From Macrostomum lignano (lineage: Eukaryota): a stretch of 64,000 nt of DNA. How positions within the stretch are numbered: the stretch's first letter is position 1; each line of letters starts with the position of its first letter. The stretch spans positions 1 to 64,000 of the forward strand of contig NIVC01002705.1 in assembly GCA_002269645.1 (NCBI GenBank), given 5' to 3'. The translations under genes and the position numbers were made by a program. Below are positions 12,842-59,222 of this stretch, piece by piece. The notes beneath the pieces are model-generated. The model worked only from the letters and a program-made list of their open reading frames with translations. It was not told the DNA's origin and did not search any database.

Positions 12842-15800
12842 ATGAATTCACGAGAGCCCTCCGATGTGGGAGGGGCCGAACGGATCGGCTCAGCTCACAG
12901 CCGCCACTCGCGGCCAGTGCGGTCAGCCAAGCGGCCTGCGCTGCACAAACGGCTGACCAAACACTCGGAAATGATAGGAGCGCTCACCGAGTTTGACCCA
13001 TTAGCAGTCTACCTAAAAGTCATGAAAGGCCGTCTGGACGACCTGCCGATCATGAACAGCCGCGTCGTGCGCATCTTCCTGTCGTCCACCTTCTCGGACA
13101 TGGGAACGGAGCGCAACTACCTCATGCAGCACGTCAATCCAAGGCTGAAAAAGTTCTGCCGCGACTCCTTCGGACTCGAGTTTCAAACCATCGACATGCG
13201 ATGGGGAGTCGGTGACGAGGTACAGCTCGACCACCAGGGTCCGTACATGTGCTACCAAGAGATCGACAACTCGCTCATCATGTCAGCCGGCCCCTACTTC
13301 ATCTGTCTGCTGGGTCAGCGCTATGGCAACCAGCCGCCTGCAGCCCTTGTCGAGGTCGACGTTTTCAACAACATCGTGGAAGCGTTGAAGGAGGACGGAC
13401 GCGACGTCTCGTGTCTACACGAGTGGTACACGATCGATGAGAACAACAAGCCACCAATCTGCGTGCTGAGACCGATTGCAACTCTAGCAGAGGCGGTAAG
13501 TGTGATTTTTAACGATTAATGCAGCGCTTGTTTTTCAGAGTTTGCAAAAGGATAAATTTAATAACCTCTAATCTCGTAATTCATTGTTCCAGGCGGACAA
13601 GGAGCTCTTGAAAGCTGCTCGACAGCGGTGGGAAGCTGTCCAAGACTCCATCATCGGACTCATGAAGAGAGGTGCCGAGTTGTGTCTTCAAAAGACTTTG
13701 ATCTCGCACGCGACAATGAAGAAGTTCACGGCGTCTGTCACCGAGATGGAGGTGATCAGCGGAATATTGTCAAAACCTCCGCAAAAGTTGGCTCAGGCTC
13801 TCGCATTCGTGAGAGAATTCTCTGATCTGGAGTCTCAGCGCGACTTCTCTCGAGGAAAGATGTTCAAGTTCATCGACCTGACCGACTCTTTGAACGAAGA
13901 TGGCGAGGCAGTAAAGGTTCTTGATGAAGCTGTGAACGCGATGGTCAAGGAGTTGAACAGACACGTTCTGACTCGAATGGCGGGATCCAATTCCTTCACT
14001 TACTCACTAAAATGGACCAATGACGCTGAGGGTGTGGGCATGAGTAGCCACAAAGACTATCTGGAAAAGTTTGGCAGCGACTACTGCGATAATGTGAAGC
14101 GCCTCGTGGCCGAATCCGTGCGGGAGAGCATGCGGCTCCGATCGGACGACCTCTACTCGGAGGTGCTGCAGCACTCGACTGCATGCGTCAACTACGTGAA
14201 GAAGTTCCAGGGTCGGCAAGAGATCATCGACAAGGTGAAAGCTTATGTGCAAGCGAGCAACACAACGGAGCCTCTGGTGGTGTACGGCGACTCGGGCAGC
14301 GGCAAGACCTCTCTACTTGGCAAGGCCGCCAGTCTGGTGCGAAGCTGGTTGCCAGAGTCCGATTCCAAAGATGCCATCGTGCTGTTGCGATTCCTCGGCA
14401 CCAGTCCCGGTACGTCGAGCATTCGACAGACACTCAAGTATCTGTGCCGTCAGCTCGCTGTGTTCGGCAACGAGGACGACCAGGAAAAGTGCGAGTCACT
14501 CGACGACTTCAAGGAGATCTTGAACACCTTCTACTCCATGCTCGAACGCATGGGCCAGTTCAGGAGAATCTTGGTGTTCCTTGACAGTGTTGATCAGCTG
14601 GACAGCTCTGACGGTGCCTACCATCTGACGTGGGTGCGGACGCCATTGCCTGCCAACGTGAAGATGGTTGTGTCCACTCTGCCCAACATGTTCGATTTGC
14701 TGAAGACATTCAAAGGGAAGCTGCCTAACCCAGACATCTACGTGGAGGTGACGCCACTGGAGACCAGTCTGTGCACCAGCATTTTGTCGGCTCTGCTCAG
14801 CGAACAAGGTCGCACTCTGAACGAGCAGCAATGGGCTCTGGTCGAGCAGGCATTCTCCAAGTGCTCACTGCCAATCTATGTTCACCTGCTGTACCACGAG
14901 GTTCTGAGATGGCGCTCTTACCAACAGGTAGATGAGTCGTCTCTGCGCTACACCGTTCGTCAGGCAATATTTCAGCTGTTCGAGAAACTCGAGTTGAAGC
15001 ACGGCAGGCTTTTTGTAAGTATTTCGTTCGTGTTAGTTACTGTAGCCCAGGCTAGTGAGAATATTCCACAACTATCCACTTATCTACAGTGATTGGATTA
15101 TTCTAGTCAGAATGACTCTCTCTGCTCATTTGTTTTTCCAGACCTCTCACGCCCTGGCATTTATCACTGCATCGAGAAACGGACTGTCAGAGTCGGAGCT
15201 GGAGGATCTGCTCAGTCTGGATGACGCCGTCCTCATTGACGTGTTTCAGCATCACCTGCCGCCCTTCATCCGCATCCCGCCGATCTGCTGGGCTCGACTG
15301 CGTCACGACATTGGCTCTTACCTGGTCGAGAGAGAGGCGGACAACATCCGGGTAGTGTTCTGGTACCACCGACAGTTCATCGAGGTGGCTCAGGAGTACT
15401 TCTTGTCGGACGAAAAGACCAGACGGGACATTCACTCTATCATGGCAGACTACTTCTTGGGTCTGTGGAGCGGCAGGAGAAAGAAGTTCGTGTACCCAGC
15501 CTATCTGCGCAAGAAGCTCGTAAGTGATGAGCACTGAAATTGATCTGTTCTCTGAACCGACTTACTGAGCCGTTCATGCATTCGTTCTCACTCCAGAACC
15601 TGCCCGAGTTCTCAATGGAGGACCGAGCCGTTCCCGAGCAGCCATTCGTGCTCCGCAAAGATGAGGACGGCACTGCTCAGTACAACCTGCGAAAGCTGAA
15701 CGAGCTGCCGTGGCACCTCATCAAGTCCGGTCGAGTGAACGAGTTCTACGACTACATTGTGTTTGACTACGACTTCATGTTCAACAAGCTGAAGGGCACG

Positions 15801-18800
15801 TCTCGGTACCTGCTGCTGAGAGACCTCGACCTCCCGCAGAAGCTCGGTGTCGAGTACATCAAAGAGGCCGAGCTCGTGTACAATGCAATCCGACTCTCCG
15901 CTCAGAGTCTCGTATACGACCCTGTCAATCTGAGCGTTGATCTCATCGGTCGGCTCATCATGTACGAGAAGGACTGTCCTCGAGTGAAGCTGCTGCTCAA
16001 CCAGTGTCGCCAGTCGAAACAGGCTCTCAGCAACTGCTGCCTCATCCCGAAGGTGCAGTGCTTCGACTCCGGGTCTGGAGTTCTCTACTCCAGCTTTGAT
16101 CTCGGACTCGGAATGGGACTGGTCATGCCCAACGGTCAGCTGGTGTCCTTCTCACTCATCAACAACGAAGTCACCTGGTACGACATCGAGGGAAATGAGA
16201 TCAAACGGTTCAGCTCCGACTACAACCTGTTCCTCAGCATGAAGTACATGTCGACTGGATACATCCCAGACGACTGCGTAATGCACGTGCTATCGATGCG
16301 CTCGAAGAATGCCGGTGTCACCGAGGACGACATGCAGGCGCTTGTCCTTAACATGGGTCGGAAGAAGATCCAAGAGGAGATAGAAGAATACGAAGCGTGC
16401 AACAAGGATGTGCCGCAAGAGCTGCGAGACATGATGGAATCGCTCAACGCTGGAGAGATTCCAGACAGCATCATGGAGAAGCTGGACGTAGACGGGATGA
16501 TGAAGAAGATGATATCTGGAGAGGAAGAGGCGCAGAAGTCGCAAGATCTCGTTCGAGTCGACTTCATGAACGGCAGGGTGACGAAACTGATGACTCTGGA
16601 CCCATCATGGAGTGTGTCATCTGATGACGTAGAATATGTGACAAAGGACTATGTGCTTTGTTGCAAGGGAAAGAGTGACTCAACGGGAACAAGCACTCTT
16701 AGACTGCTGTCACTCGGAGAGAAGAAGTTTGTTGCGCTTTATGAAGAAAATACAAGCGGAACGTCAAGAATCGGCACCCAAAACCTCGATAGCAAAAACA
16801 ACTTGCTGTGCTTTGGGATCGAGGCAGGCAGCAACCACTCAACATTGCTCGTGTTCATGAACTTAAACACGAAAGAGATCGTTCGAGGTTCTTTGCCTGA
16901 CATCTTCAAGTCAGCTGACAAAGCGGAACTTGAGTCCATGTGGCGCCACTCACCACTAAAGCAACCTGACAATAAGAAAGAAGAAAAGACACCGGATGAA
17001 AATGACGAGAAGACAAAAGCGGACGAAAGTCCGGCAGCGAGTGAAGCCGACTTGAAATCGAAGACCATCGAGTTACTTCAGCAAGCTGAAGAAGTTTCTG
17101 CTAGCTCCTGTCTCATTGATCATGAGGGAAACATCGTTGCTATTGTAAACGCAACAAAATCTGCTGAAGAAGGCAGTGGGAAGCAAGACAGTACTTTTTT
17201 CGTTACATTCGCCATCTCTGACAGCCTCAAGCCCATTTGTATTGTGGACCTTCAGGAAAGCTTCGATATAAAGTACAGTCAGAATTTCGTAAGCCCAAGT
17301 CGTCGTCGAATGACTTTCCTTCTGAAGAGAAAGTCCAGAGTATACGGTCAAACAAGCGTTCTTCGCGGTCTGTTGTATGACTGTGACGAAAAGCGCGCTG
17401 TTGGGATGACAATATCACCTGAGCAAGACAAGTTCAAAAAGGCTGCATCAAGTTTTGGTGACGGAACGCAGGCTAAATTTACCGAAGACGAGCGATTGCT
17501 AGTTACGTCTGGTTCTAAGGTGCTTCTACTTGTGTGGTCCGTGCAAACTGGCGAACTTTTGGAAGGAATCTCCCTGGGAACGGCCGAAAGCTTTCTTTGT
17601 GGCCAGCCGAAAGGCACGGACTTCTTCACTATCTGCCATTTTCCTGACGAGTCTGCTGGCGACTCTGACGAGCGAATGTTCATCATGACTAAGGTGTACA
17701 ATTTGAAACACTTCACCGACAAGCTTAGTCACCACAGCGAAGAGGATGCACTGCTTCCAATGTATACTCAGTTCAAGCCGTGTAAGAATGCGACAGCGCT
17801 CACCGATTGTCACACGGTTGACATTCGCACTAATGAGGCTCTGATTTCATTGAACACTCGGACACTGGTGGTTAAGAAGTCCTCTTCACGCGACTCGAAA
17901 GAAGACGATCAGGTAGAGACGCTCAGGCTGTCGGATAAACCTCCCATTATTGAGCTTCGCCGCGATCCGAAAGCTCCTTTTTCTGTTGGCATCTCAGTGA
18001 TCAGCAACCAGCTGGTAGAAAAAGTTTTTGGTAGCACATCAAAGGAGGAACTCCTTCAAAGTCGTAAGTCCAAATCAGTTGGAGGGGTCGAGTTCAAATT
18101 TCACGTCGACGCAGAAAACGAATCGAGTGACAAAGAAATGGAACTACAGGCTTCACTGCGTATCTCAAAGAACAACATCTTCGCCCAGACTCCGATTTCG
18201 CATGGATCAAATTCTCTAGAATTAGGATTTCTTGATGAATCTCGACAGTGCTTAATTTCACTTAAGTGCCACGTTCAGTACAGCTTCAAAGAGAGTTTTG
18301 TCTCACTTGTCCATCTCCCCACAATGGAGAGCGTGGTATTCAAGTTTACGAAAAATAATCATCTAGACAGCGGCGATGATAGCTCAGACAGGCTCTCACA
18401 AGATTTTATCGAGCGGTTTTCAGAGGTCATTTATGGCGGCCTAAAGGCGACATCTAAGAAGAAAGGCAGTAAAAAGCAAAAGAGGAAGAAAGACAAGAAG
18501 GAAGAGACGAAGGAGCCTTCCGAAAACCAGGAGACCAAGGAAGAGAATTCAACCGAAACCAAAGGCGATGAAGAAGAGCTGACGGAAGCGGCTAAGAAAG
18601 CGAAGGAAGAAAAGTTTCTAAAAAAGCGATTGAATAATCGCAATGACCTTGTCGACATTCAGTTCCTGCCAGAGAAGTGCACGCTCAACCTGGCCTTCAG
18701 CCAACACCTCAAAGCGTCCGAGGAGATTCGCGTCGGCGTCGGAGTTCCTCCGATTTGGCTCGGCGCGGTTGTGCGCCTCGACTACAGCGACGTGGAGAAA

Positions 18801-20200
18801 GGAACTCCGACCAGCGAGATGCAGTTCCAGCACTCCATCGGCAAAGTGTTCGACATGGGACCCGCAGTGGCCTTCCTCCACGACAACCAGCACCTGGTCA
18901 ACTACAAGCTTCAAATTGTGGACTACATGAAAGGCGAAGTGATCCGCTGTCTCAGCCAGGACGAGGACTTGTACTTTGTTAGACTGCAGGCCACGCCAGA
19001 CTGCAGCCTGCTTGTTAGCCAGGTGTACTTTCCCGCCTACGAGGTGGAGTTCGCCGTATTCGATGACGAATCCATGAACAATTCGGACATGTTCGCAATT
19101 GTTCCGCCTCGAGGCTTGCAGGTGAGATTAGCAACGATTGTTATTGGGAATGGCAAATCTTTTAATGCTTACGCTTATAAGAATCCGATCTAAAGATGCC
19201 TTTTCTCAATGACTGCGTTTAATTTCTGCACTCCAGGTCTATGTAATCAGTGATGGACGCCGCGTTGCAAACTACCTGTTTGAGTCGGATCCTTTCGGAC
19301 TCTGCTTGGTTGGGGAAGATGGTCGGGACCTGCTGGTGCTGACGCATAACGCACCAATCATGCTGTTTGAGCTTCACGACCCGCAACCGCTAGTTGCTGC
19401 TGATGGAGCTGCCCAGATGCACTCGATGAAGGCGATTGATGAAAAGGCGAATACAGACTCGAGTGTCGGTTCGCCGGCGAGAGCACCTGGTCCAAGACCG
19501 GAATACCTGGACATGCTGAGTGAGATTCAAGGGGTTGTTGATTACAACTTAATACGTGGTAGTTAATAGGCGTTATTGCCCTAGATGTATTCCGGAAGGC
19601 TTAATTGAAGTTGGGATTCTTCGCTGAGGGAAGTTACTGATCTTATTTCATCCCAGTGGGATTTTTCAGAATCCTCAAAATTGTGCCTTCAGATTCCTTC
19701 CCACAGTGGTGTCTTCAGGGTCCTTCTCAGAGAATTGGTATCTTCAGGTCCTTCCCACATTGGTGTCCTCAAAGTCATTTCCACAGTGCTGTGTTCAGAG
19801 TCCTCCCTTCCCAAATTGGTGTCCTCAAAGTCCTTCCCACAATGATTTTTTCCGGTTCCTTCTCTCAGAGTATTGTCTTCAGAGTCCTGCTCAGAAAGCG
19901 GTGTCTTCAGCCTCCTGAGAGAGCGGTGTCTTCAGGGTCCTTCCCGAGAGTGGTGTATTCAGATCCTTCTCAGAGTGTGGTGTCTTCAGAGTCCTTTCTA
20001 TAGTGGTGTCTTTAGATTCCTTACCCTACGGAACTCGTTGAGCACTACAAAATTCCCCCCATTTCTTCATTCCAGAGCCAGCACTGGCCAGCTCAATGGC
20101 CGAGGTAGCGAACGCGAGGCCCGTGGACCCGATCGAGTTCCTGGCGCAGTGCCTGCTGCGCTACAAGGCGCAGTGCGACAGCCAGCAGCCAGATATCTGA
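12842..20200 (+). CDS. NWD-type STAND NTPase copy 1 (DUF4062-like + NACHT + degenerate propeller + Dpy-30-like tail), ~2128 aa; exons 12842-13495, 13593-15014, 15142-15519, 15597-19121, 19237-19519, 20076-20200
   Basis: [17 protein letters not shown]...IDMRWGV N-terminal domain as in NWD1/NWD2/TEP1; Walker [10 protein letters not shown]; Walker [12 protein letters not shown]. All splice junctions are GT-AG and keep the frame. Without the last splice the frame stops at 19566. Confidence 0.88.
19690..20030. repeat. Degenerate ~21-bp minisatellite (ggtgtcttcagagtccttc-like) in the last NWD intron; also at ~35865-36050
   Basis: Recurrent ggtgtcttcag/agtccttccc motifs. Confidence 0.7.
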
Positions 20201-21119
20201 TGCTGAATTTCCTTGATGTGACTCGCTGTCTTGAAGCTTACCTGACCGTGCGCCTTGCCTTATTGATTGCACTCTGGTTAAGTTGGTCAAGCTGTCATTA
20301 TAACTTCATTCGAAAATTTGCAATCCATCAAGTCAGACACAGTATGCGAATGAAGATGGCAGATATTGAATTAAATACCGATTTAATGAGAAATTACTTG
20401 ACCTTCACCTATCCGCTTGCCACTTAAATTCAATTTCTGTCGGAGTTGCTAATTTTTTTACCTCTATTTACTCAAACTCTAATCTCCTTTATTTACCACT
20501 CGTGCTCATATTTTACTGCTTATTGGACTCTTTAGCACAGAAAAAAATCCCAGATATTTTTCAGCCCTTTTCTGTACCAAGCTCTTAAAATTATCAAGTG
20601 ACATCACTGCAACCGTTGTGTTTTTTTAGCCTTACCTTATTTTAGAGATTGTTGAAGCAACATTCTGTAACTAGCAATCAACTCAACAGACAGTCTAATA
20701 AAAAATTTAATCTTGCACGATTTTTATCGCATTTTTAACTTTAAACTGTTACTGGATATTTTTTTTATAAATTTGTCTTTTTGTTTACAGTACAAACTAA
20801 GCGATGTGTTCTTGATAGTTCAAGAATTCTCTCCGATTTGCGATAATTTGATCACTGCTGGCACCCGATCTGTCCTGTTTTATCTGTGTTTCCATTATTT
20901 ACTCAAACTAATACAAAGTCAAAGAGACTGCCTTAATACGATATTTTTTGCTGAAAAAGTTAATCTACTTTGATTAACTGGCTTATACTTTCTTTTATAA
21001 AAAATCAAACATTAACCTAAAACAATCACCAGTTCCTGAGAAACTGCTGGTTTGTCATGCAACGAAGTGTTTCTTGATCTGCATGCTTTTGCCCTGTCCG
21101 ACACCTTTTAATAGTTTTT

Positions 21120-21414
21120 ATGGACATGTTCCCCAACTGATGTACATGTTCCTGAGCTGTTGGACATGTCCCCAACTGTTGGACATGCTCCCAAACTGTT
21201 GGACATGTTCCCAAACTGATGTACATGTTCCTGAGCTGTTGGACATGTCCCCAACTGTTGGACATGCTCCCAAACTGTTGGACATGCTCCCCAACTGTTG
21301 GACATGTTCCCCAACTGATGTACATGTTCCTGAGCTGTTGGACATGTCCCCAACTGTTGGACATGCTCCCAAACTGTTGGACATGCTCCCCAACTGTTGG
21401 ACATGTTCCCAAAC
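21120..21414. repeat. 20-bp minisatellite variant array (catgttcccaaactgttgga family)
   Basis: Tandem 19-20-bp units with a recurring variant unit (aactgatgtacatgttcctgagctg). Confidence 0.92.
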
Positions 21415-21765
21415 GCGAGCCTGCTGGGTGACTTGAGGAAGCGGGTGTTGGCCGACACCATATCCTGCCTCTCCAGGAAGTCCTGCAGCGCCTGGGTGTT
21501 GCCGTTCTCGCGGGGCGTCACAAACAGCGACCGCTCGGACCTCCGAGTACGACCACCGTGTCGCGCCGAGCAGTCTCCTCCACGCGCGCAGAGAGCTGCT
21601 CGAAGAAGTCCTGAGCCTCATCTGGGCGGGTGGCAGGTGGCGCGTACACGCAGAACAGGCGAACGTTCCGGCCGCGAAGCCGGACGTCTACCCAAAGCAT
21701 CCGGGGGACAGGGAAGAGCAGCGATAGCTCTGCTGCAGTCTTGGGCCGATCAGTGCTCCAACTCC
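21415..21765 (-). mobile_element. Fragment of a non-LTR retrotransposon APE endonuclease (RTE-like), frameshifted
   Basis: Across frames the minus strand gives GVGALIG..., RMLWVDVRLRGRNVRLFCVYAPP..., VVVLG(D), ENGNTQALQDFLERQDMVSANTRF, matching the APE motifs GVG, YAP, LGDxNA and NxNG..L..NT.F. Confidence 0.75.
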
Positions 21766-21775
21766 TAACGTCCTA

Positions 21776-22222: not shown

Positions 22223-22555
22223 TCCTCTCACAGCTCGTAAAGATGTCCTTAATTCTGTTTATAGTTCTCCCCATTGGTAAAGATGCTCCTTAAGTGCCCA
22301 TTGGACAAGTCATTAGACAAGTGCACGTTATTCAGCAGCTCTTTTCCTGGCAAGACCACCAGTATTGTCAAATAAAAGACTAAACGCGGAGAAAACAGTT
22401 TGAAATTGAAAAAGAAACGAATGGAGCGTTTCGGTCTCTGCTTTGAGCCGTCTATAGTTTTACTTCAGATGACGCTTTGCATCCAAATTTACCCAACTCA
22501 GCCAGACTTTTTTAGTTTTCATGTTTTAAACAAAATTATGCGCTGGGTGCGCGGC

Positions 22556-28049: not shown

Positions 28050-31000
28050 ATGGTCAAAACTAAGCAGGTGCTTTTCACAATGAAAACAAGAAAATACTAG
28101 AAAATCAATAACAGCTACTAAACCTGTTCCAGAATTCACGAGAGCCCTCCGATGTGGGAGGGGCCAAACGGATCGGCTCAGCTCACAGCCGCCACTCGCG
28201 GCCAGTGCGGTCAGCCAAGCGGCCAGCTCTGCTAAAACGGCTGAACAAATACTCGGAGTTTATAGGAGCGCTCACCGAGTTTGACCCATTAGCAGTCTAC
28301 CTAAAAGTCATGAAAGGCCGTCTGGACGACCTGCCGATCATGAACAGCCGCGTCGTGCGCATCTTCCTGTCGTCCACCTTCTCGGACATGGGAACGGAGC
28401 GCAACTACCTCATGCAGCACGTCAATCCAAGGCTGAAAAAGTTCTGCCGTGACTCCTTCGGACTCGAGTTTCAAACCATCGACATGCGATGGGGAGTCGG
28501 TGACGAGGTACAGCTCGACCACCAGGGTCCGTACATGTGCTACCAAGAGATCGACAACTCGCTCATCATGTCAGCCGGCCCCTACTTCATCTGTCTGCTG
28601 GGTCAGCGCTATGGCAACCAGACGCCTGCAGCCCTTGTCGAGGTCGACGTTTTCAACAACATCGTGGAAGCATTGAAGGAGGACGGACGCGACGTCTCGT
28701 GTCTACACGAGTGGTACACGATCGACGAGAACAACAAGCCACCAATCTGCGTGCTGAGACCTATTGCAACTCTAGCAGAGGCAGTAAGTGTGGTTTTTAA
28801 CGATTAATGCAGCGCTTGTTTTTCAGAGTTTGCAACAGGATAAATTTAATAACCTCAAATTTCGTAATTCATTGTTCCAGGCGGACAAGGAGCTCTTGAA
28901 AGCTGCTCGACAGCGGTGGGAAGCTGTCCAAGACTCCATCATCGGACTCATGAAGAGAGGTGCCGAGTTGTGTCTTCAAAAGACTTTGATCTCGCACGCG
29001 ACAATGAAGAAGTTCACGGCCTCTGTCACCGAGATGGAGGTGATCAGCGGAATATTGTCAAAACCTCCGCAAAAGTTGGCTCAGGCTCTCGCATTCGTGA
29101 GAGAATTCTCTGATCTGGAGTCTCAGCGCGACTTCTCTCGAGGAAAGATGTTCAAGTTCATTGACCTGACCGACTCTGTGAACGAAGATGGCGAGGCAGT
29201 AAAGGTTCTTGATGAAGCTGTGAACGCGATGGTCAAGGAGTTGAACAGACACGTTCTGACTCGAATGGCGGGATCCAATTCCTTCACTTACTCACTAAAA
29301 TGGACCAATGACGCTGAGGGTGTGGGCATGAGTAGCCACAAAGACTATCTGGAAAAGTTTGGCCGCGACTACTGCGATAATTTGAAGCGCCTCGTGGCCG
29401 AATCCGTGCGGGAGAGCATGCGACTCCGATCCGATGACCTCTACTTAGAGGTGCTGCAGCACTCGACTGCATGCGTCAACAACGTGAAGAAGTTCCAGGG
29501 TCGGCAAGAGATCATCGACAAGGTGAAGGCTTATGTGCAAGCGAGCAACACAACGGAGCCTCTGGTGGTGTACGGCGACTCGGGCAGCGGCAAGACCTCT
29601 CTTCTTGGCAAGGCCGCCAGTCTGGTGCGAAGCTGGTTGCCAGAGTCCGATTCCAAAGATGCCATCGTGCTGTTGCGATTCCTCGGCACCAGTCCCGGTA
29701 CGTCGAGCATTCGACAGACACTCAAGTACCTGTGCCGTCAGCTCGCTGTGTTCGGCAACGAGGACGACCAGGAAAAGTGCGAGTCACTCGACGACTTCAA
29801 GGAGATCTTGAACACCTTCTACTCCATGCTCGAACGCATGGGCCAGTTCAGGAGAATCTTGGTGTTCCTTGACAGTGTTGATCAGTGGACAGCTCTGACG
29901 GTGCCTACCATCTGACGTGGGTGCGGACGCCATTGCCTGCCAACGTGAAGATGGTTGTGTCCACTCTGCCCAACATGTTCGACTTGCTGAAGACATTCAA
30001 AGGGAAGCTGCCGAACCCAGACTTCTACGTGGAGGTGACGCCACTGGAGACCAGTCTGTGCACCAGCATTTTGTCGGCTCTGCTCAGCGAACAAGGTCGC
30101 ACTCTGAACGAGCAGCAATGGGCTCTGGTTGAGCAGGCATTCTCCAAGTGCTCACTGCCAATCTATGTTCACCTGCTGTACCACGAGGTTCTGAGATGGC
30201 GCTCTTACCAACAGGTAGATGAGTCGTCTCTGCGCTACACCGTTCGTCAGGCAATATTTCAGCTGTTCGAGAAACTCGAGTTGAAGCACGGCAGGCTTTT
30301 TGTAAGTACTTCGTTCGTGTTAGTTACTGTAGCCCAGGCTAGTGAGAATATTCCACAACTATCCACTTATCTACAGTGATTGGATTATTCTAGTCAGAAT
30401 GACTCTCTCTGCTCATTTGTTTTTCCAGACCTCTCACGCCTTGGCATTCATCACTGCATCGAGAAACGGACTGTCAGAGTCGGAGCTGGAGGATCTGCTC
30501 AGTCTGGATGACGCCGTCCTCATTGACGTGTTTCAGCATCACCTGCCGCCCTTCATCCGCATCCCGCCGATCTGCTGGGCTCGACTGCGTCACGACATTG
30601 GCTCTTACCTGGTCGAGAGAGAGGCGGACAACATCCGGGTTGTGTTCTGGTACCACCGACAGTTCATCGAGGTGGCTCAGGAGTACTTCTTGTCGGACGA
30701 AAAGACCAGACGGGACATTCACTCCATCATGGCAGACTACTTCTTGGGTCTGTGGAGCGGCAGGAGAAAGAAGTTCGTGTACCCAGCCTATCTGCGCAAG
30801 AAGCTCGTAAGTGATGAGCGCTGCAGTTGATTTGTTCTTTGAACCGCCTTCAATGCGTTCTCACTGCTCCCCTCCAGAACCTGCCCGAGTTCTCAATGGA
30901 GGACCGAGCCGTTCCCGAGCAGCCATTCGTGCTCCGCAAAGATGAGGACGGCACTGCTCAGTACAACCTGCGAAAGCTGAACGAGCTGCCGTGGCACCTC

Positions 31001-34000
31001 ATCAAGTCCGGTCGAGTGAACGAGTTCTACGACTACATTGTGTTTGACTACGACTTCATGTTCAACAAGCTGAAGGGCACGTCTCGGTACCTGCTGCTAG
31101 AGACCTCGACCTCCCGCAGAAGCTCGGTGTCGAGTACATCAAAGAGGCCGAGCTCGTGTACAATGCAATCCGACTCTCCGCTCAGAGTCTCGTATACGAC
31201 CCTGTCAATCTGAGCGTTGATCTCATCGGTCGGCTCATCATGTACGAGAAGGACTGTCCTCGAGTGAAGCTGCTGCTCAACCAGTGTCGCCAGTCGAAAC
31301 AGGCTCTCAGCAACTGCTGCCTCATCCCGAAGGTGCAGTGCTTCGACTCCGGGTCTGGAGTTCTCTACTCCAGCTTTGATCTCGGACTCGGAATGGGACT
31401 GGTCATGCCCAACGGTCAGCTGGTGTCCTTCTCACTCATCAACAACGAAGTCACCTGGTACGACATCGAGGGAAATGAGATCAAACGGTTCAGCTCCGAC
31501 TACAACCTGTTCCTCAGCATGAAGTACATGTCGACTGGATACATCCCAGACGACTGCGTAATGCACGTGCTATCGATGCGCTCGAAGAATGCCGGTGTCA
31601 CCGAGGACGACAGACAAGCGCTTGTCCTTAACATGGGTCGGAAGAAGATCCAAGAGGAGATCGAAGAATACGAAGCGTGCAACAAGGATGTGCCGCAAGA
31701 GCTGCGAGACATGATGGAATCGCTCAACGCTGGAGAGATTCCAGACAGCATCATGGAGAAGCTGGACGTAGACGGGATGATGAAGAAGATGATGTCTGGA
31801 GATGAAGAGGCGCAGAAGTCGCAAGATCTCGTTCGAGTCGACTTCATGAACGGCAGGGTGACGAAACTGATGACTCTGGACCCATCATGGAGTGTGTCAT
31901 CTGATGACGTAGAATATGTGACAAAGGACTATGTGCTTTGTTGCAAGGGAAATAGTGACTCAACGGGAACAAGCACTCTTAGACTGCTGTCACTCGGAGA
32001 GAAGAAGTTTGTTGCGCTTTATGAAGAAAATACAAGCGGAACGTCAAGAATCGGCACCCAAAACCTCGATAGCAAAAACAACTTGCTGTGCTTTGGGATC
32101 GAGGCAGGCAGCAACCACTCAACATTGCTCGTGTTCATGAACTTAAACACGAAAGAGATCGTTCGAGGTTCTTTGCCTGACATCTTCAAGTCAGCTGACA
32201 AAGCGGAACTTGAGTCCATGTGGCGGTACTCACCACTAAAGCAACCTGACAATAAGAAAGTAGAAAAGACACCGGATGAAAATTGTGAGAAGACAGAAGC
32301 GGACGAAAGTCCGGCAGCGAGTGAAGCCGACTTGAAATCGAAGGCCATCGAGTACTTCAGCAAGCTGAGAAGTTTCTGCTAGCTCCTGTCTCATTGATCA
32401 TGAGGGAAACATCGTTGCTATTGTAAACGCAACAAAATCAGCTGTAGAAGGGAGGGCAGAACAACTCAATACTTTCTTCGTTACATTCTCCATCTCTCAA
32501 AGCCTCAAGCCCATTTGTATTGTGGACCTTCAGGAAAGCTTCGATATAAAGTACAGTAAAAATTTCGTAAGCCCAAGTCGTCGTCGAATGACTTTCCTTC
32601 TGAAGAGAAAGTCCAGATTATACGGTCAAATAAGCGTTCTTCGTGGTCTGCTGTACGACTGTGACGAAAAGCGCGCTGTTGGAATGACAATATCACCTGA
32701 GCAAGACAAGTTCAAAAAAGCTGTTTCAAATTTTGGTAATGGAACGCAGGCTAAATTTACCGAAGACGAGCGATTGCTAGTTACGTCTGGTTCTAAGGTG
32801 CTTCTACTTGTGTGGTCCGTGCAAACTGGCGAACTTTTGGAAGGAATCTCCCTGGGAACGGCCGAAAGCTTTCTTTGTGGCCAGCCGAAAGGCACGGACT
32901 TCTTCACTATCTGTCATTTTCCTGACGAGTCGGCTGGCGACTCTGACGAGCAAATGTTCATCATGACTAAGGTGTACAATCTGAAACACTTCACCGACAA
33001 GCTTAGTCACCACAGCGAAGAGGATGCACTGCTCCCCATGTATACTCAGGTCAAGCCGTGTAAGAATGCGACAGGACTCACCGATTGTCACACGGTGGAC
33101 ATTCGCACTAATGAGGCTCTGATTTCATTGAACACTCGGACACTGGTGGTTAAGAAGTCCTCTTCACGCGACTCGAAAGAAGACGATCAGGTAGAGACGC
33201 TCAGGCTGTCGGATAAACCTCCCATTATTGAGCTTCGCCGCGATCCGAAAGCTCCTTTTTCTGTTGGCATCTCAGTGATCAGCAACCAGCTGGTAGAAAA
33301 AGTTTTTGGTAGCACATCAAAGGAGGAACTCCTTCGAAGTCGTAAGTCCAAATCAGTTGGAGGGGTCGAGTTCAAATTTCACGTTGACGCAGAAAACGAA
33401 TCAAGTGACAAAGAAATGGAACTACAGGCTTCACTGTGTATCTCAAAGAACAACATCTTCGCCCAGACTCCGATTTCGCATGGATCAAATCTCTAGAATT
33501 AGGATTTCTTGATGAATCTCGACAGTGCTTAATTTTACTTAAGTGCCACGTTCAGTACAGCTTCAAAGAGAGTTTTGTCTCACTTGTCCATCTCCCCACA
33601 ATGGAGAGCGTGGTATTCAAGTTTACGAAAAATAATCATCTAGACAGCGGCGATGATAGCTCAGACCGACTCTCACAAGATTTTATCGAGCGGTTTTCAG
33701 AGGTCATCCATGGCGGTGAACAAGAGCTGACGGAAGCGGCTAAGAAAGCGAAGGAAGAAAAGTTTCTAAAAAAGCGATTGAATAATCGCAATGACCTTGT
33801 CGACATTCAGTTCCTGCCAGAGAAGTGCACGCTCAACCTGGCCTTCAGCCAACACCTCAAAGCGTCCGAGGAGATTCGCGTCGGCGTCGGAGTTCCTCCG
33901 ATTTGGCTCGGCGCGGTTGTGCGCCTCGACTACAGCGACGTGGAGAAAGGAAATCCGACCAGAGAGATGCAGTTCCAGCACTCCATCGGCAAAGTGTTCG

Positions 34001-36226
34001 ACATGGGACCCGCAGTGGCCTTCCTCCACGACAACCAGCACCTGGTCAACTACAAGCTTCAGATTGTGGACTACATGAAAGGCGAAGTGATCCGCTGTCT
34101 CAGTCAGGACGAGGACTTGTACTTTGTCAGACTACAAGCCACGCCAGACTGCAGCCTGCTTGTTGGCCAGGTGTACTTTCCCGCCTACGAGGTGGAGTTC
34201 GCCGTATTCGATGACGAATCCATGAACAGTTCGGACCTGTTCGCAATTGTTCCACCTCGAGGCTTGCAGGTAAGATTAGCAACGATTGTTATTGGGAATG
34301 GCAAATCTTTTAATGCTTACGCTTATAAGAATCCGATCTAAGATGCCTTTTCTCAATGACTGCGTTTAATTTCTGCACTCCAGGTCTATGTAATCAGTGA
34401 TGGACGCCGCGTTGCAAACTACCTGTTTGAGTCGGATCCTTTCGGACTCTGCTTGGTTGGGGAAGATGGTCGGGACCTGCTGGTGCTGACGCATAACGCA
34501 CCAATCATGCTGTTTGAGCTTCACGACCCGCAACCGCTAGTTGCTGCTGATGGAGCTGCCCAGATGCACTCGATGAAGGCGATTGATGAAAAGGCGAATA
34601 CAGACTCGAGTGTCGGTTCGCCGGCGAAAGCACCTGGTCCAAGACCGGAATACCTGGACATGCTGAGTGAGATTCAAGGGGTTGTTGATTACATCTTAAT
34701 ACGTGGTAGTTAATAAGCGTTATTGCCCTAGATGTATTCCGGAAGGCTTAATTGAAGTTGGGACTCTTCGCTGAGGGAAATTACTGATTTTATTTTAATA
34801 TTTCATCCCAGTGGGATTTTCAGAATCCTCAGTATTGTGTCTAGTTTCGTTTGGGCCACAAACGATTGCGTCGACGGAAATTGTGAACTAAGTAAATTTT
34901 TGCGCGCCTTTCAGGCATCGAAACAGGAATACAACAGATTGCTTATCTGCGAATAGTCTATGGTCAAGCCGCCCCCCATCTTTGGATATTCCCAACGGGT
35001 TATATTTGGATATACCCATTTGCAGAAAAGCAATCTGTATATTCCTGTATCAATGCGTTTGTGAGGATATTTTTTATTCAATACAACAATTAAAGCTGAA
35101 TAAACAGATTGTATACATGTACGAAAACGGCCGTAACGTGGGCATAATGAAACGTGGACCAATTGTTCCGCAATAATCGATGAGTAGAGCTAGAATCGAC
35201 AATAATTACACTCACATCAGCCGAATTGCATGGTTTGTTCCGCATGGGATCCTCGGGGCAAGCCTCTTCTTTGCTTGGCAGTGGTGGCAGAGCATCATCG
35301 TTACCGCATTCAATGAATAGGATGAACTCTATCAACTCTTCGTCATCCGCCTCGTCACGTTCACCCATACTCAAGTCGCTGAGAAAGTTGACCTCATTTC
35401 CATTCAAGCCGTCAATGCTTTCAATCGGCAAATTCGACCAATTTATCATTCGTATGAGTGGCATGAATAGAGGTTAGGGCAAACAGAAGAAACAGGAACA
35501 TGTATCCTCTGCTGCAGAGTTCCAGCTTATAAGACCACAACTTCATTTAACATGTTTCGTCTATGGTAATTTCAGACTGTTCCGCTTAACTTTTCGTTCC
35601 AGACGATTAGTCTATGGCCATTATCTGGCTTGCGCCAAGTGGAAAATGCCTATGACACAAATCCCTAGAATCACTCAGTGAACAATTCCCGTCTGGGAAG
35701 TTGTGTCCTAGCCATTTTGAATTGGTTTTTGGACGAAACTAGACACAATTCCACTATCGAGAGTTCACGATTCACACACAACTGCCTTACCGCGTCTCGG
35801 CCTACCGGCCTCGACGCTATGGCAGTTGTGTGTGAATCGTGACCTCTTGATAATCATACATTGTGCCTTCAGATTCCTTCATTCCTTCCCAGAGAGTGGT
35901 GTCTTCAGGGTCCTTCCCACATTGGTGTCCCCAAAGTCCTTCCCACAGTGGTGTCTTCTGGGTCCTTCTCCCAGAGTATTGTCTTCAGAGTCCTGCTCAG
36001 AAGGCGGTGTTTCCAGCCTCCTCAGAGAGCGGTGTCTTGAGAGTCTTTACCCTATGGAACACGTTGAGCACTACAAAATTCCCCCCATTTTCTCATTCCA
36101 GAGCCAGCACTGGCCAGCTCAATGGCCGAGGTAGCGAACGCGAGGCCCGTGGACCCGATCGAGTTCCTGGCGCAGTGTCTGCTGCGCTGCAAGGCGCAGT
36201 GCGACAGCCAGCAGCCAGATATCTGA
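28050..36226 (+). CDS. NWD-type STAND NTPase copy 2; exons 28050-28067, 28133-28783, 28881-30301, 30429-30806, 30878-34269, 34384-34666, 36102-36226; several single-base frameshifts
   Basis: Near-identical to copy 1 over most exons and introns, with a candidate MVKTKQ micro-exon upstream. One-base losses near 29886, 31099, 32353-32368 and 33491 break the frame (error or pseudogenisation). Confidence 0.8.
34834..35860. mobile_element. ~1-kb insertion specific to unit 2, with a 17-bp inverted repeat and a 3' hairpin (non-autonomous DNA element)
   Basis: Absent from the matching site in unit 1 (19681 aattgtgccttcag). attgtgtctagtttcgt (34834-34850) is the reverse complement of acgaaactagacacaat (35733-35749). 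Stem-loop at ~35762-35846; attgtg occurs at both junctions. Confidence 0.65.
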
Positions 36227-49699: not shown

Positions 49700-49737
49700 A
49701 GCTTAGACTGCACCGCGTGTGAGTTTTTCTGCAGTGT

Positions 49738-52617: not shown

Positions 52618-55600
52618 TCAGAGGCAGGTACAGCATCGGCGGGGTTGCGATTCCGTCGCATGGGACTCAGTTTTTGACGAATCAGGGGTCGACAGCTCAG
52701 ATGAGGTTGAGCCGGGAGAGTTTGATTCAGTTGGGTCAAGCAGCTCAAACAGCATAATGGGCGCATTGTGCGTGAGAACCAGAAGGTCCCGCCCGGCCTC
52801 ACCGATCAGGCAGAAGCCAACGGGGTCTGACTCAAACAGGTAGTTAGCAACGCGACAACCGTCTGATATACGGTACACCTGAGCAAGATCGGGCAATGAG
52901 GTGCAAAACTGTGAAGATCCGAACTCTACACCAGTATCCGGAATTATAAGTAGTAAAAACTACAAATTTACTAAATCTCACTTGCAAGCCTCGAGGTGGA
53001 ATAACTGCGAACATGTCCGAATTGTTCATGGATTCGTCATCGAATACGGCGAACTCCACCTCGTAGGCGGGAAAGTACACCTGGCCAACAAGCAGGCTGC
53101 AGTCTGGGGTGGCCTGTAGTCTGACAAAGTAGTGGCCTGTAGTCTGACAAAGTACAAGTCCTCGTCCTGGCTGAGACAGCGGATCACTTCGCCTTTCATG
53201 TAGTCCACAATCTGAAGCTTGTAGTTGACCAGGTGCTGGTTGTCGTGGAGGAAGGCCACTGCGGGTCCCATGTCGAACACTTTGCCGATGGAGTGCTGGA
53301 ACTGCATCTCGCTGGTCGGATTTCCTTTCTCCACGTCGCTGTAGTCGAGGCGCACAACCGCGCCGAGCCAAATCGGAGGAACTCCGACGCCGACGCGAAT
53401 CTCCTCGGACGCTTTGAGGTGTTGGCTGAAGGCCAGGTTGAGCGTGCACTTCTCTGGCAGGAACTGAATGTCGACGAGGTCGTTTCTTTTTGACATCCGC
53501 TTGTTAATGAAGTCCGCTATCATTTCTTGTCGGTTTTGACTTGTAAAGTCCTGCCGCGTTTCCAAATTTCCATCCTCTGCTTCATCGGCACGACTGGTAG
53601 CTTCAGATGGAAATATTATGTGGTTAAATTTTTTCATGAAGCTTTTTGATAGTACTTTGTCAAAAGAGTCAGTACTTAGTCCAAATTGGTCGCTCAAATC
53701 GGAAAGATTGTACCTGCACCCTCTGAGAGTTGTGAGTCTGATGACTGATAAATAGCTCTCTTTAATGTCCTGCAGTGTAAGCCTAATTGTAATTAGCAAC
53801 TTCTTCGCTTCGTTTATAAAGACAATGTCTAGTATGTTGTCTTCAGACAAAATCGGCGATTGAAGGAACTTGGTATTCATCATATTAGCTTTTGCTGTCG
53901 TCTGAAGGGCGCAGCGTTGCTGTTCCCTTGTGGGATCCTCATTGGGATGCTCTGAAGCAACAGTAAATCGAACTCCAAATACATCTTTGCTCTCATTCTT
54001 AGACTTCGGTTGTTCGTCATTGGCACCGAATAACGACTCAATCAGATCAGAATCGCGTATAACAATCGTCGTGACCTCTCTTTGTCCGGGTCGGCAACGA
54101 ACTTCAATTTGGGGCTTAGTGGAAAGGACGCACTTTTCTTCATCTTGATCAAGCGTATTCGAAGACTTTTCGCGAATGTTTATACTAATTGTCTCCTTAC
54201 CTATGATATCGACTTCGTATTTGTTAGTTAGCGATACAGCGCAACGTGCTTGCCTTCTCTGGGTAAATTTTGGAAGCATGACGGCAGACTCCTCTCTAAT
54301 TGACGCATCGTGAAATGACTTAGTGTTGTACACCTTAGCCATGATGTACATTCGCTCGTCAGTGTCACCGGCCGACTCATCGGGAAAATGGCAGATGGTA
54401 AAAAAATCGGTACCCCTTGGCTGACCGGATAAAAAACTCTCAGCCGATCCCATTCGAATGCCTCTGATGAGTTCACCTGATTCAACTGACCAAACTAGAA
54501 GCAGAAATTTAGTGCCAGAAGTAAATAGGAGCTTTTCATCTTCCGTAAATTTTGCTTGAGTTCCGTCACCAAATGCCGAAACTGCAGATTTAAACTCGCT
54601 GTTTGCCTGAGTAATCCTCAGTGGAGTCGCCTTTCGCGCTGCAACATCGAATATGACTCCCCGAATTGGTTCCTGTTGCGCGTCAGTCAATTTGGCTCGC
54701 TTTTTCAAAAGAAAGGCTAGCCTCTCTCTGGAGGCGCTTGCAAAGTTTTGCGAATATTTCACTTCGAGAACAGTATTCAAATCTATTATGTGAACAGGTT
54801 TGAGAGACCCACAAGTAGAAAAAACGACGAAAAACGTTCGCGACTCAACATCTCTATTATTAGTCTCTCCAGTGGCAGTTATCATTGCGACAATATCTCC
54901 TTTGGGGCCAAAAAGGCAAGCATTTGCTCGAATTTTTTCGGCACTTAATAGTAGATTTAAAGAGCTCGAGTTGTCCGACACAGCTTTTGCAGAGCTTGAC
55001 CATGAGTCCATGCGCCACATACGTTTAAGATCAGCTTTGTCCATGGACTGGAAATTTTCAGAAAAATATAACCGAGAAGTCACTCTAGTCACCAAATTCA
55101 TAACCACCAACAATGAAGACGCCTTATCATTTATCTCCAAACAGAAGCACAACAGATTGCTTTTGCCGTCGAGGTTTTGGGTGCCAATATTTGAAGTTCC
55201 ACTTGTCTCTTCGTCATAAAGAGTAACGAACTTCTTCTCTCCGAGTGACAGCAGTCTAAGAGTGCTTGTTCCCATTGAGTCACTCTTTCCCTTGCAACAA
55301 AGCACATAGTCCTTTGTCACATATTCTACGTCATCAGATGACACACTCCATGATGGGTCCAGAGTCATCAGTTTCGTCACCCTGCCGTTCATGAAGTCGA
55401 CTCGAACGAGATCTTGCGACTTCTGCGCCTCTTCCTCTCCAGATATCATCTTCTTCATCATCCCGTCTACGTCCAGCTTCTCCTTGATGCTGTCTGGAAT
55501 CTCTCCAGCGTTGAGCGATTCCATCATGTCTCGCAGCTCTTGCGGCACATCCTTGTTGCACGCTTCGTATTCTTCGATCTCTTCTTGGATCTTCTTCCGA

Positions 55601-58600
55601 CCCATGTTAAGGACAAGCGCCTGCATGTCGTCCTCGGTGACACCGGCATTCTTCGAGCGCATCGATAGCACGTGCATTACGCAGTCGCCTGGGATGTATC
55701 CAGTCGACATGTACTTCATGCTGAGGAACAGGTTGTAGTCGGAGCTGAACCGTTTGATCTCATTTCCCTCGATGTCGTACCAGGTGACTTCGTTGTTGAT
55801 GAGTGAGAAGGACACCAGCTGACCGTTGGGCATGACCAGTCCCATTCCGAGTCCGAGATCAAAGCTGGAGTAGAGAACTCCAGACCCGGAGTCGAAGCAC
55901 TGCACCTTCGGGATGAGGCAGCAGTTGCTGAGAGCCTGTTTCGACTGGCGACACTGGTTGAGCAGCAGCTTCACTCGAGGACAGTCCTTCTCGTACATGA
56001 TGAGCCGACCGATGAGATCAACGCTCAGATTGACAGGGTCGTATACGAGACTCTGAGCGGAGAGTCGGATTGCATTGTACACGAGCTCGGCCTCTTTGAT
56101 GTACTCGACACCGAGCTTCTGCGGGAGGTCGAGGTCTCTTAGCAGCAGGTACCGAGACGTGCCCTTCAGCTTGTTGAACATGAAGTCGTAGTCAAACACA
56201 ATGTAGTCGCAGAACTCGTTCACTCGACCGGACTTGATGAGGTGCCACGGCAGCTCGTTCAGCTTTCGCAGGTTGTACTGAGCAGTGCCGTCCTCATCTT
56301 TGCGGAGCACGAATGGCTGCTCGGGAACGGCTCGGTCCTCCATTGAGAACTCGGGCAGGTTCTGGAGGGGAGCAGTGAGAACGCATTGAAGGCGGTTCAA
56401 AGAACAGATCAACTGCAGCGGTCATCACTTACGAGCTTCTTGCGCAGATAGGCTGGGTACACGAACTTCTTTCTCCTGCCGCTCCACAGACCCAAGAAGT
56501 AGTCTGCCATGATGGAGTGAATGTCCCGTCTGGTCTTTTCGTCCGACAAGAAGTACTCCTGAGCCACCTCGATGAACTGTCGGTGGTACCAGAACACTAC
56601 CCGGATGTTGTCCGCCTCTCTCTCGACCAGGTAAGAGCCAATGTCGTGACGCAGTCGAGCCCAGCAGATCGGCGGGATGCGGATGAAGGGCGGCAGGTGA
56701 TGCTGAAACACGTCAATGAGGACGGCGTCATCCAGACTGAGCAGATCCTCCAGCTCCGACTCTGACAGTCCGTTTCTCGATGCAGTGATGAATGCCAGGG
56801 CGTGAGAGGTCTGGAAAAGCAAATGAGCAGAAAGAGTCATTCTGACAAAGAGAGATAAGTGGCGGATAGTTGTGGGTTTTTCACACTAGCCTGGGCTACA
56901 GTAACTAACACGAAGTACTTACAAAAAGCCTGCCGTGCTTCAACTCGAGTTTCTCGAACAGCTGAAATATTGCCTGACGAACGGTGTAGCGCAGAGACGA
57001 CTCATCTACCTGTTGGTAAGAGCGCCATCTCAGAACCTCGTGGTACAGCAGGTGAACATAGATTGGCAGTGAGCACTTGGAGAATGCCTGCTCGACCAGA
57101 GCCCATTGCTGCTCGTTCAGAGTGCGACCTTGTTCGCTGAGCAGAGCCGACAAAATGCTGGTGCACAGACTTGTCTCCATTGGCGTCACCTCCACGTAGA
57201 AGTCTGGGTTCGGCAGCTTCCCTTTGAATGTCTTCAGCAAGTCGAACATGTTGGGCAGAGTGGCCACAACCATCTTCACGTTGGCAGGCAATGGCGTCCG
57301 AACCCACGTCAGATGGTAGGCACCGTCAGAGCTGTCCAGCTGATCAACACTGTCAAGGAATACCAAGATTCTCCTAAACTGGCCCATGCGTTCGAGCATG
57401 GAGTAGAAGGTGTTCAAGATCTCCTTGAAGTCGTCGAGTGACTCGCACTTTTCCTGGTCGTCCTCGTTGCCGAACACAGCGAGCTGACGGCACAGATACT
57501 TGAGTGTCTGTCGAATGCTCGACGTACCGGGACTGGTGCCGAGGAATCGCAACAGCACGATGGCATCTTTGGAATCGGACTCTGGCAACCAGCTTCGCAC
57601 CAGACTGGCGGCCTTGCCAAGTAGAGAGGTCTTGCCGCTGCCCGAGTCGCCGTACACCACCAGAGGCTCAGTTGTGTTGCTCGCTTGCACATAAGCTTTC
57701 ACCTTGTCGATGATCTCTTGCCGACCCTGGAACTTCTTCACGTAGTTGACGCATGCAGTCGAGTGCTGCAGCACCTCCGAGTAGAGGTCGTCCGATCGGA
57801 GCCGCATGCTCTCCCGCACGGATTCGGCCACGAGGCGCTTCACATTATCGCAGTAGTCGCTGCCAAACTTTTCCAGATAGTCTTTGTGGCTACTCATGCC
57901 CACACCCTCAGCGTCATTGGTCCATTTTAGTGAGTAAGTGAAGGAATTGGATCCCTCCATTCGAGTCAGAACGTGTCTGTTCAACTCCTTGACCATCGCG
58001 TTCACAGCTTCATCAAGAACCTTTACTGCCTCGCCATCTTCGTTCACAGAGTCGGTCAGGTCGATGAACTTGAACATCTTTCCTCGAGAGAAGTCGCGCT
58101 GAGACTCCAGATCAGAGAACTCTCTCACGAATGCGAGAGCCTGAGCCAACTTTTGCGGAGGTTTTGACAATATTCCGCTGATCACCTCCATCTCGGTGAC
58201 AGAGGCCGTGAACTTCTTCATTGTCGCGTGCGAGATCAAAGTCTTTTGAAGACACAACTCGGCACCTCTCTTCATGAGTCCGATGATGGAGTCTTGGACG
58301 GCTTCCCACCGCTGTCGAGCAGCTTTCAAGAGCTCCTTGTCCGCCTGGAACAATGAATTACGAGATTAGAGGTTATTAAATTTATCCTTTTGCAAACTCT
58401 GAAAAACAAGCGCTGCATTAATCGTTAAAAATCACACTTACCGCCTCTGCTAGAGTTGCAATAGGTCTCAGCACGCAGATTGGTGGCTTGTTGTTCTCAT
58501 CGATCGTGTACCACTCGTGTAGACACGAGACGTCGCGTCCGTCCTCTTTCAACGCTTCCAGGATGTTGTTGAACACGTCGACCGCGACAAGGGCTGCAGG

Positions 58601-59222
58601 TGGCTGGTTGCCATAGCGCTGACCCAGCAGACAGATGAAGTAGGGGCCGGCAGACATGATGAGCGAGTTGTCGATCTCTTGGTAGCACATGTACGGACCC
58701 TGGTGGTCGAGCTGTACCTCGTCACCGACTCCCCATCGCATGTCGATGGTTTGAAACTCGAGTCCGAAGGAGTCACGGCAGAACTTTTTCAGCCTTGGAT
58801 TGACGTGCTGCATGAGGTAGTTGCGCTCCGTTCCCATGTCCGAGAAGGTGGACGACAGGAAGATGCGCACGACGCGGCTGTTCATGATCGGCAGGTCGTC
58901 CAGACGGCCTTTCAGTACATGTCGGTACAGAATAGAGCTAGATGGTCCTTGTTTACCAACTTGTTTTTCTTTGGCCGAATGAAATGGTTTTAAAAGCCAT
59001 TTTCCTTTTTTCGAAGCCTCTGAACATACAATTTCAGAACCTTTCGATGTGCGTGACGATTTACTTGTACTAGATGATGAATCTGAAGATGCACTTGTTG
59101 AAGAGCTGGTATCAGACAGCACAATGGCATCTATTGGGCTGGCTGTCTAGAGTGGGGGATTATTTTGGTAGTTATACATGTATGCACACTTTGCAGCTAT
59201 ATCATTTCGATATACTAACCAT
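52618..59222 (-). CDS. NWD-type STAND NTPase copy 3 (inverted, chimeric); exons 59222-59220 (candidate ATG-only), 59146-58442, 58344-56923, 56810-56433, 56361-52982, 52878-52618; 23-bp duplication frameshifts exon 5
   Basis: Same motifs and intron positions as copy 1. It has a unique Ser-rich N-terminus, a diverged central segment (~55230-53480) and a unique tail ending RRCCTCL-stop. Confidence 0.85.

Follow-up and report, generated by a model that had tools for sequence, protein, structure and literature searches.

A 64,000-nucleotide stretch of the Macrostomum lignano genome (positions 1 to 64,000 of contig NIVC01002705.1, assembly GCA_002269645.1; here called the window) carries a cluster of NWD1/NWD2-family genes. 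Copy 1 of this cluster probably gains a C-terminal Dpy-30 dimerization/docking (D/D) domain by cis-splicing, as would copy 2 if its frameshifts are assembly errors. Three NWD1/NWD2-like genes with the architecture DUF4062, NACHT, and NWD1 winged helix were found. Copies 1 (12.8 to 20.3 kb) and 2 (28.1 to 36.3 kb) lie in a tandem duplication of about 15.2 kb, and the third copy, which ends in a CaaX-like sequence, is inverted (59.1 to 52.6 kb). Copy 1 is the only copy that is intact in the assembly as read. It consists of six exons, every intron is of the GT-AG type, and the open frame encodes 2128 amino acids. Its parts are as follows.

12842..13495, + strand: exon 1, with the ATG start and DUF4062 (PF13271; Pfam E = 1.3e-9)
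13593..15014, + strand: exon 2, with NACHT (PF05729; Pfam E = 3e-10), AAA_16 (E = 7.5e-12), and a Walker motif
15142..15519, + strand: exon 3, the NWD1-type winged helix (HTH_NWD1, PF25469; Pfam E = 3e-8)
15597..19121, + strand: exon 4, 1175 codons in a single open frame, strand-rich, with acidic/basic low-complexity inserts
19237..19519, + strand: exon 5, ending PRPEYLDML + A, with the short helix that opens the Dpy-30 domain
19520..20075, + strand: last intron, 556 nt, with a 26-nt minisatellite at 19683-20022
20076..20200, + strand: exon 6, the helix-loop-helix core of the Dpy-30 D/D domain, plus the stop codon

Membership in the NWD1/NWD2 family is indicated by Pfam, which placed DUF4062, NACHT, and the NWD1-type winged helix in the expected order, and Walker A is intact (GDSGSGKTS). 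The best protein matches of the spliced copy 1 product were from M. lignano itself (95 to 98% identity). Scaffold NIVC01004056.1 of the Mlig_3_7 assembly (L001) is collinear with window positions 49-26499 at 96 to 98% identity.

The last two exons of copy 1 are cis-spliced at 19519/20076. A sequence-only reading of this DNA had joined a donor at 19519/19520 to an acceptor ending at 20075, and its coordinates proved exact: the donor CTGA|GTGAGA and the acceptor cattccag| join the exons in frame in phase 1, with A + AG forming a Lys codon, and the frame then runs to a stop at 20198-20200. Without splicing, it ends at the TAA at 19564-19566. The last donor shares the intron bases GTGAGAT with the exon 4 donor, and the last acceptor resembles the other acceptors of the gene. 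The matching pair in copy 2 was likewise found where that reading had put it, at 34666/36102. While the exon borders are constant among loci, the intervening intron varies in its 26-nt minisatellite and insertions, measuring 556 nt in copy 1, 1435 nt in copy 2, and 409 nt at the Mlig_3_7 locus. The last intron of copy 2 has about 1 kb of extra sequence (window 34843-35883) with no counterpart in copy 1 or at the Mlig_3_7 locus.

Public protein models carry the same junction, so the last exon is not "hidden," as the sequence-only reading had described it. UniProt entry A0A1I8HEY0 (P0001) has a C-terminal end identical to the spliced tail of copy 1. NCBI entry BOX15_Mlig021732g1 (P0003, from GCA_002269645.1) has the same ending with an LLRCKAQ variant, and its locus uses the same donor and acceptor around the 409-nt intron. 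Annotation of that assembly was a genome-guided transcriptome produced with StringTie/TACO from RNA-seq data and a de novo assembly (PMC5730564). It was divided at trans-splice and poly(A) sites that had been mapped experimentally, with open reading frames (ORFs) called by TransDecoder (PMC5730564). Given this origin of the annotation, the junction in BOX15_Mlig021732g1 is transcript derived.

By both sequence and predicted fold, the tail of copy 1 is a bona fide Dpy-30 motif, as had been proposed from the sequence. Pfam Dpy-30 (PF05186; cut-off, 22 bits) matched the last 50 residues of the spliced C terminus with 34.4 bits (E = 1.8e-8) and exon 6 alone with 35.0 bits. In a phmmer search of PDB sequences, the top matches were human DPY30 D/D domains (E = 4.9e-6; 3g36/4riq, 5e-6 to 1e-5). 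The DPY30 alignment spans query residues 8-52, beginning in exon 5 (PRPEYLDM versus PTRAYLDQ) and continuing across the junction. This places the coding sequence for the start of the domain before the intron, which is direct internal evidence for cis-splicing. An AlphaFold2 model of the exon 6 peptide, built with a flatworm alignment, was a helix-loop-helix (helices at residues 2-13 and 18-36) with a predicted local distance difference test score (pLDDT) of 91.5. Of the 34 highest-ranking Foldseek matches to this model among PDB structures, nearly all were D/D domains of the Dpy-30/RIIa type (axonemal DYDC and DPY30, DPY30-ASH2L). Superposition on DYDC/DPY30 gave root mean square deviations of 0.6 to 1.1 A at probability 1.00, with E values of only 0.05 to 0.5 because the domain is only 40 amino acids long. 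A six-frame search of the whole window returned only two Dpy-30 exons, those of copies 1 and 2, and none downstream of copy 3. An exhaustive phmmer search with the 40-residue exon 6 peptide returned only P0001 and a chimeric model, P0121, the query being too short to judge other long proteins.

The sequence-only reading knew of no NACHT-propeller-Dpy-30 fusion, but databases hold six M. lignano entries that combine PF05186 with NACHT. Four M. lignano proteins that are 42 to 43% identical to copy 1 (P0005, P0006, P0008, and P0009) have PF05186 at the extreme C terminus, and these paralogue tails score 39 to 44 bits against Pfam Dpy-30. At the P0006 locus (L002), a phase 1 intron splits the domain in the Arg codon of YLQHI-R-ALL, the aligned counterpart of the copy 1 Lys codon in YLDML-K-PAL. 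A local hidden Markov model (HMM) of the M. lignano tails matched NWD homologues of Schistosoma and Paragonimus in their final ~40 residues, e.g., LDYFEESGLTEMMKKAMFDVVDKRPIDPISYIAKSLLKQHHSQNN, and had no match among the non-flatworm homologues. Dpy-30 is also the best Pfam family for the trematode tails, with 27.5 bits in Schistosoma turkestanicum and scores below threshold in the others. A phase 1 intron (ESGL A|gtaagt ... ttattcag|CT) splits the tail of the S. turkestanicum gene (L003) as well; it lies exactly 14 residues ahead of the conserved RP, just where M. lignano has it. Since distant M. lignano paralogues and a trematode share both the tail and the phase 1 intron, the fusion and its intron are, on this comparative evidence, older than the split between Macrostomorpha and Neodermata. 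Across flatworms, purifying selection has conserved the Dpy-30-tailed STAND ATPase. The literature searched contained no paper that links Dpy-30 to NACHT and none on M. lignano NACHT genes, and a survey of the D/D superfamily names neither NACHT nor NWD (PMC8339350). The fusion is a variant of the NWD family that databases already contain, although it has apparently not been described in a paper.

Two public trematode models, P0013 (Schistosoma mansoni Smp_145280) and P0063, diverge right at the homologous intron point. Along with P0019, they end just past ESGL or ATGL, reading into the last intron. All three are probably without their Dpy-30 exon, and other trematode models with such endings probably miss their last exon as well.

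Several observations weigh against the reading of copy 1 as a Dpy-30-tailed protein in a cluster with alternative tails. Transcript support for the junction is second-hand, through public models. By the Pfam scores given above, exon 5 contributes almost nothing to the Dpy-30 match, and the DPY30 alignment contains one 1-residue gap. Copies 2 and 3 are both frameshifted, by five deletions and by a duplication, respectively, which leaves copy 1 as the sole intact copy. The RRCCTCL ending of copy 3 is out of frame as assembled, owing to a 23-bp duplication, and no copy-3-type protein occurred among the public matches of the spliced copy 1 product. In addition, public model P0121 (818 amino acids) starts at an ATG inside the Dpy-30 exon.

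This last model would suit an arrangement in which the NWD protein ends at 19566 and the Dpy-30 exon belongs to a separate downstream gene, trans-spliced at 20075 or starting at the ATG at 20096. M. lignano does trans-splice many mRNAs, and about 7% of its transcripts are polycistronic precursors (PMC5730564). P0121, however, is a chimera that after 25 residues reads a tubulin-like locus at 38.1 to 39.7 kb in antisense and then in sense. An ATG start would also remove helix 1, and exon 5 encodes, in frame, the PxxYLD with which the domain opens. The same split with the same intron phase recurs in a 43%-identical paralogue and in Schistosoma, and the TBONE-processed model holds the exons together. 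The separate-gene arrangement was rejected on the grounds that the domain begins in exon 5, that the split is conserved, and that P0121 is an artefactual chimera; we consider it extremely improbable.

Another possibility is that the 19519 donor is used in only some transcripts, so that intron retention yields a regulated isoform lacking the D/D domain. Short read-through ORFs are present here and in Schistosoma, and the S. mansoni and Paragonimus kellicotti models (P0013 and P0063) read into the intron. The read-through peptides, however, are unconserved (15 codons here, 5 in P0006, and unrelated in Schistosoma), and the models are most simply explained as annotation errors. Regulated retention is accordingly rated improbable, and cis-splicing of the Dpy-30 exon onto the NWD protein remains the preferred reading for copy 1.

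The other two copies are laid out as follows.

28130..36226, + strand: copy 2, tandem duplicate, ~97% identical to copy 1
36102-36226, + strand: exon 6 of copy 2, with the LLRCKAQ variant
52618..59122, - strand: copy 3, inverted paralogue, with exons 59122-58442, 58344-56923, 56810-56433, 56361-52982, and 52878-52618
52618..52641, - strand: copy 3 tail, RRCCTCL plus stop (CGC CGA TGC TGT ACC TGC CTC TGA)
52621-52632, - strand: CaaX-like CTCL of copy 3, with Cys exactly four residues from the C terminus
53109..53154, - strand: 23-bp tandem duplication (TACTTTGTCAGACTACAGGCCAC x2) in copy 3 exon 4, causing a frameshift and a premature stop at 53028-53026

The sequence-only reading had assigned the Dpy-30 tail to copies 1 and 2 alike. 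The junction is indeed present in both, but copy 2 is frameshifted, with five 1-bp exonic deletions at 29886, 31099, 32353, 32368, and 33490. None of these lies in a homopolymer, and there are no insertions. Copy 2 also has a 129-bp in-frame deletion at 33717, in a Lys/Glu-rich stretch. Relative to copy 1, it has a synonymous divergence (dS) of 0.045 and a ratio of nonsynonymous to synonymous divergence (dN/dS) of 0.26, with no nonsense substitutions. These lesions fit either a very recent pseudogene or long-read consensus errors.

The ending of copy 3 was correctly read in the earlier work as RRCCTCL-stop at 52618-52641. Removal of the duplication restores an ORF with RRCCTCL at its end. The frame of copy 3 stays open for 1897 codons, and the gene is a mosaic. 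Two tracts of it, the first 3.8 kb at the 5' end and the final 0.5 kb of exon 4, share ~97% identity with copy 1 (copy 1 positions 13023-16813 and 18645-19129, against 52982-59122 on the - strand), with dS values of 0.04 to 0.06 and dN/dS of about 0.2. In the middle of exon 4 and in exon 5, synonymous sites are saturated and dN is low (0.5 and 0.10). Because the ~97% tracts flank a synonymously saturated middle, comparison of the copies suggests that copy 3 is an old, long-constrained paralogue partly overwritten by gene conversion. The exon 1 ORF of copy 3 lacks an in-frame ATG; the start may come from a one-codon first exon (ATG|gtaggt) at 59303-59301 (- strand), spliced to an acceptor ctctag| at 59147. 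A profile search with the C-terminal tail alignment and a search with the C-terminal 802 residues of copy 3 returned no matches, which we read as a limit of word-based candidate selection and not as absence: known homologues such as P0001 share long identical stretches, yet these searches returned nothing.

If copies 2 and 3 were true pseudogenes, copy 1 would be the single working gene and the CaaX tail a relic, and the idea of two tails serving two destinations would fall away for this haplotype. The deletions of copy 2 outside homopolymers, the 23-bp duplication and premature stop of copy 3, and the lack of a copy-3-type protein among the public matches are all consistent with this possibility. 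On the other hand, dN/dS is 0.2 to 0.26 with zero nonsense substitutions in both copies, and the 1897 open codons of copy 3 span a region saturated at synonymous sites. The frame-disrupting lesions of copy 2 are all single-base deletions, a signature of long-read consensus error, and a public M. lignano model (P0002) likewise reads part of the tail out of frame. We treat pseudogenization as a serious possibility but not the expected one.

CaaX-like endings recur in the family. Among 63 non-Macrostomum NWD homologues (P0010-P0072), 20 have Cys at position -4 (binomial P of about 3e-19, against a Cys background of 1.9% in these homologues). The 20 include proteins of nemerteans, an annelid, a horseshoe crab, rotifers, amphioxus, fishes, frogs, and one mammal. 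Typical endings are KSRACVVS, QPSRTCVLS, and KTKSSHACLLL, often with basic residues before the Cys, and the vertebrate homologues most often have X = L. The QPRRCCTCL end of copy 3 agrees with QPSRTCVLS of the Tachypleus NWD2 homologue at Q, P, R, and C. RRCCTCL therefore resembles an ancestral ending of the family more than a chance read-through. The literature searched contained nothing on NWD1 prenylation, and the CaaX ending of the NWD family is apparently unreported.

The proposal in the sequence-only reading that copy 3 ends in a CaaX signal is thus favored by the family-wide Cys at -4, but the motif is out of frame as assembled and non-canonical. Its a1 and a2 residues are Thr and Cys, not aliphatic, where the homologues have VV, LI, LL, VL, and similar pairs. 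CTCL might therefore be no prenylation signal at all, with the Cys-rich end being palmitoylated, metal binding, or functionless. This would accord with the a1/a2 residues, with the frame, and with the failure of the copy 3 tail to match any Pfam family. Against it stand the 20 of 63 homologues with C at -4 at a 1.9% background, the QP-R-C spacing common to copy 3 and the Tachypleus protein, and the vertebrate preference for X = L. We regard a tail without prenylation as rather unlikely and the CaaX reading of copy 3 as plausible and sensible in view of the phylogeny.

A further element of the sequence-only reading, a propeller between the ATPase and the tail, fared less well. Pfam WD40 had no match at E <= 1 in the 1300-residue region after the winged helix, and an AlphaFold2 model of the 994-residue exon 4 region was strand-rich but unreliable (pLDDT 43). 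A local hhalign comparison of the flatworm C-terminal region with the WD region of non-flatworm NWD2 gave a probability of 82% (E = 1e-5) over the last ~120 residues only. The propeller is thus weakly supported, and degenerate WD blades broken up by charged low-complexity inserts are a likely but tentative reading of the region.

How the tail might act can be proposed from better-known domains. Dimerization and docking are predicted for it because both are established for Dpy-30/RIIa D/D domains (DPY30-ASH2L structures; RSP3, PMC3494852), and the amphipathic helices of RSP3 bind Dpy-30 domains (PMC3494852). By analogy, the Dpy-30 tail would form an antiparallel four-helix-bundle homodimer, which would pair two NWD molecules at their C termini. 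The groove of the dimer could then dock onto an amphipathic helix of an anchoring protein, fixing the NWD pair at a defined site. The Dpy-30 tail of flatworms sits at the position of the CaaX box in many other animals' homologues. A flatworm protein-protein tether may thus have taken over the localizing role that a prenyl membrane anchor has elsewhere in the family. We tentatively suggest, with less than even confidence, that NWD-family STAND ATPases require some C-terminal means of localization, that an ancestral CaaX anchor was exchanged for an AKAP-like-docking Dpy-30 dimer, possibly ciliary, before the Macrostomorpha-Neodermata split and that M. lignano keeps both. Different targeting by the two tails is plausible, while a ciliary site for the flatworm protein is a guess.

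Other features of the window are listed below. A 20-nt array is present downstream of both copy 1 and copy 2.

3346-5712, - strand: 788-residue ORF, no Pfam match; its counterpart in the Mlig_3_7 locus is a called gene of 850 residues
22522-22695 and 25601-25855, - strand: tubulin-like gene remnants flanking the gypsy fragments
22962-25274, + strand: gypsy-type pol fragments (reverse transcriptase, RNase H, integrase), frameshifted, downstream of copy 1
36122-36196 and 38071-39731: matches of the chimeric ab initio model P0121 (Dpy-30 exon and tubulin-like locus)
38071-39731, - strand: tubulin-like gene downstream of copy 2, uninterrupted (ORF 38941-39669)
61271-61735, - strand: DUF4517 ORF (Pfam E = 4e-14)
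2282-2743, 21101-22365, 36898-37780, 40080-40650, and 41674-42550: long minisatellite arrays, units of 16-42 nt
43733-44140, 45703-46500, 47233-48000, 49651-50224, and 50936-51900: further long minisatellite arrays, units of 16-42 nt

The function and site of action of NWD1/NWD2 are poorly understood, and a conserved tail, a putative lipid anchor in many animals and a putative dimerizing docking module in flatworms, offers a testable handle on the site. From the flatworm tail one would expect constitutive dimerization at the C terminus and a specific partner with an amphipathic helix, and that partner could be accessible to pull-down in M. lignano, where transgenesis and RNA interference exist, or in Schistosoma. 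If the proposed exchange of tails is correct, M. lignano would be a natural system in which to compare localization by a lipid anchor with localization by Dpy-30.

Compared with known systems, the flatworm protein has the N-terminal order of NWD1/NWD2 (DUF4062, NACHT, winged helix) and full-length homology to nemertean, annelid, arthropod, and vertebrate proteins, with E values down to 1e-200. It differs from them in a 1300-residue C-terminal region without recognizable WD40 repeats and in having Dpy-30 in place of CaaX. Its tail aligns with the D/D domain of DPY30 over 45 residues at about 47 to 56% identity, and the predicted helix-loop-helix superposes on DPY30/DYDC1/2 at about 1 A, although the flatworm tail is one residue shorter between YL and the conserved Pro. 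DPY30, a COMPASS/WRAD subunit that docks on ASH2L, and DYDC1/2 are small proteins with little beyond the D/D domain, whereas in the flatworm protein this domain is the last 2% of a 2128-residue ATPase. Farnesylated hGBP1, a large CaaX-anchored NTPase, and the polybasic-CaaX Ras/Rho proteins resemble copy 3 and the 20 of 63 NWD homologues in ending C-x-x-X, often after a K/R-rich stretch, but CTCL of copy 3 is non-canonical and out of frame as assembled. The nearest analogues of the Dpy-30-tailed protein are AK7, NME5, and RSP2. AK7 and NME5 are nucleotide-handling enzymes tethered in axonemes by a C-terminal Dpy-30 domain (residues 686-718 of 723 in AK7, and also C-terminal in NME5), at sites in the radial spokes and central pair. 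The spoke protein RSP2 likewise docks on an axonemal scaffold by a C-terminal Dpy-30 domain. The catalytic parts are unrelated, kinases in one case and a STAND ATPase in the other, but the arrangement of a nucleotide-handling protein with a C-terminal Dpy-30 tether is common to both.

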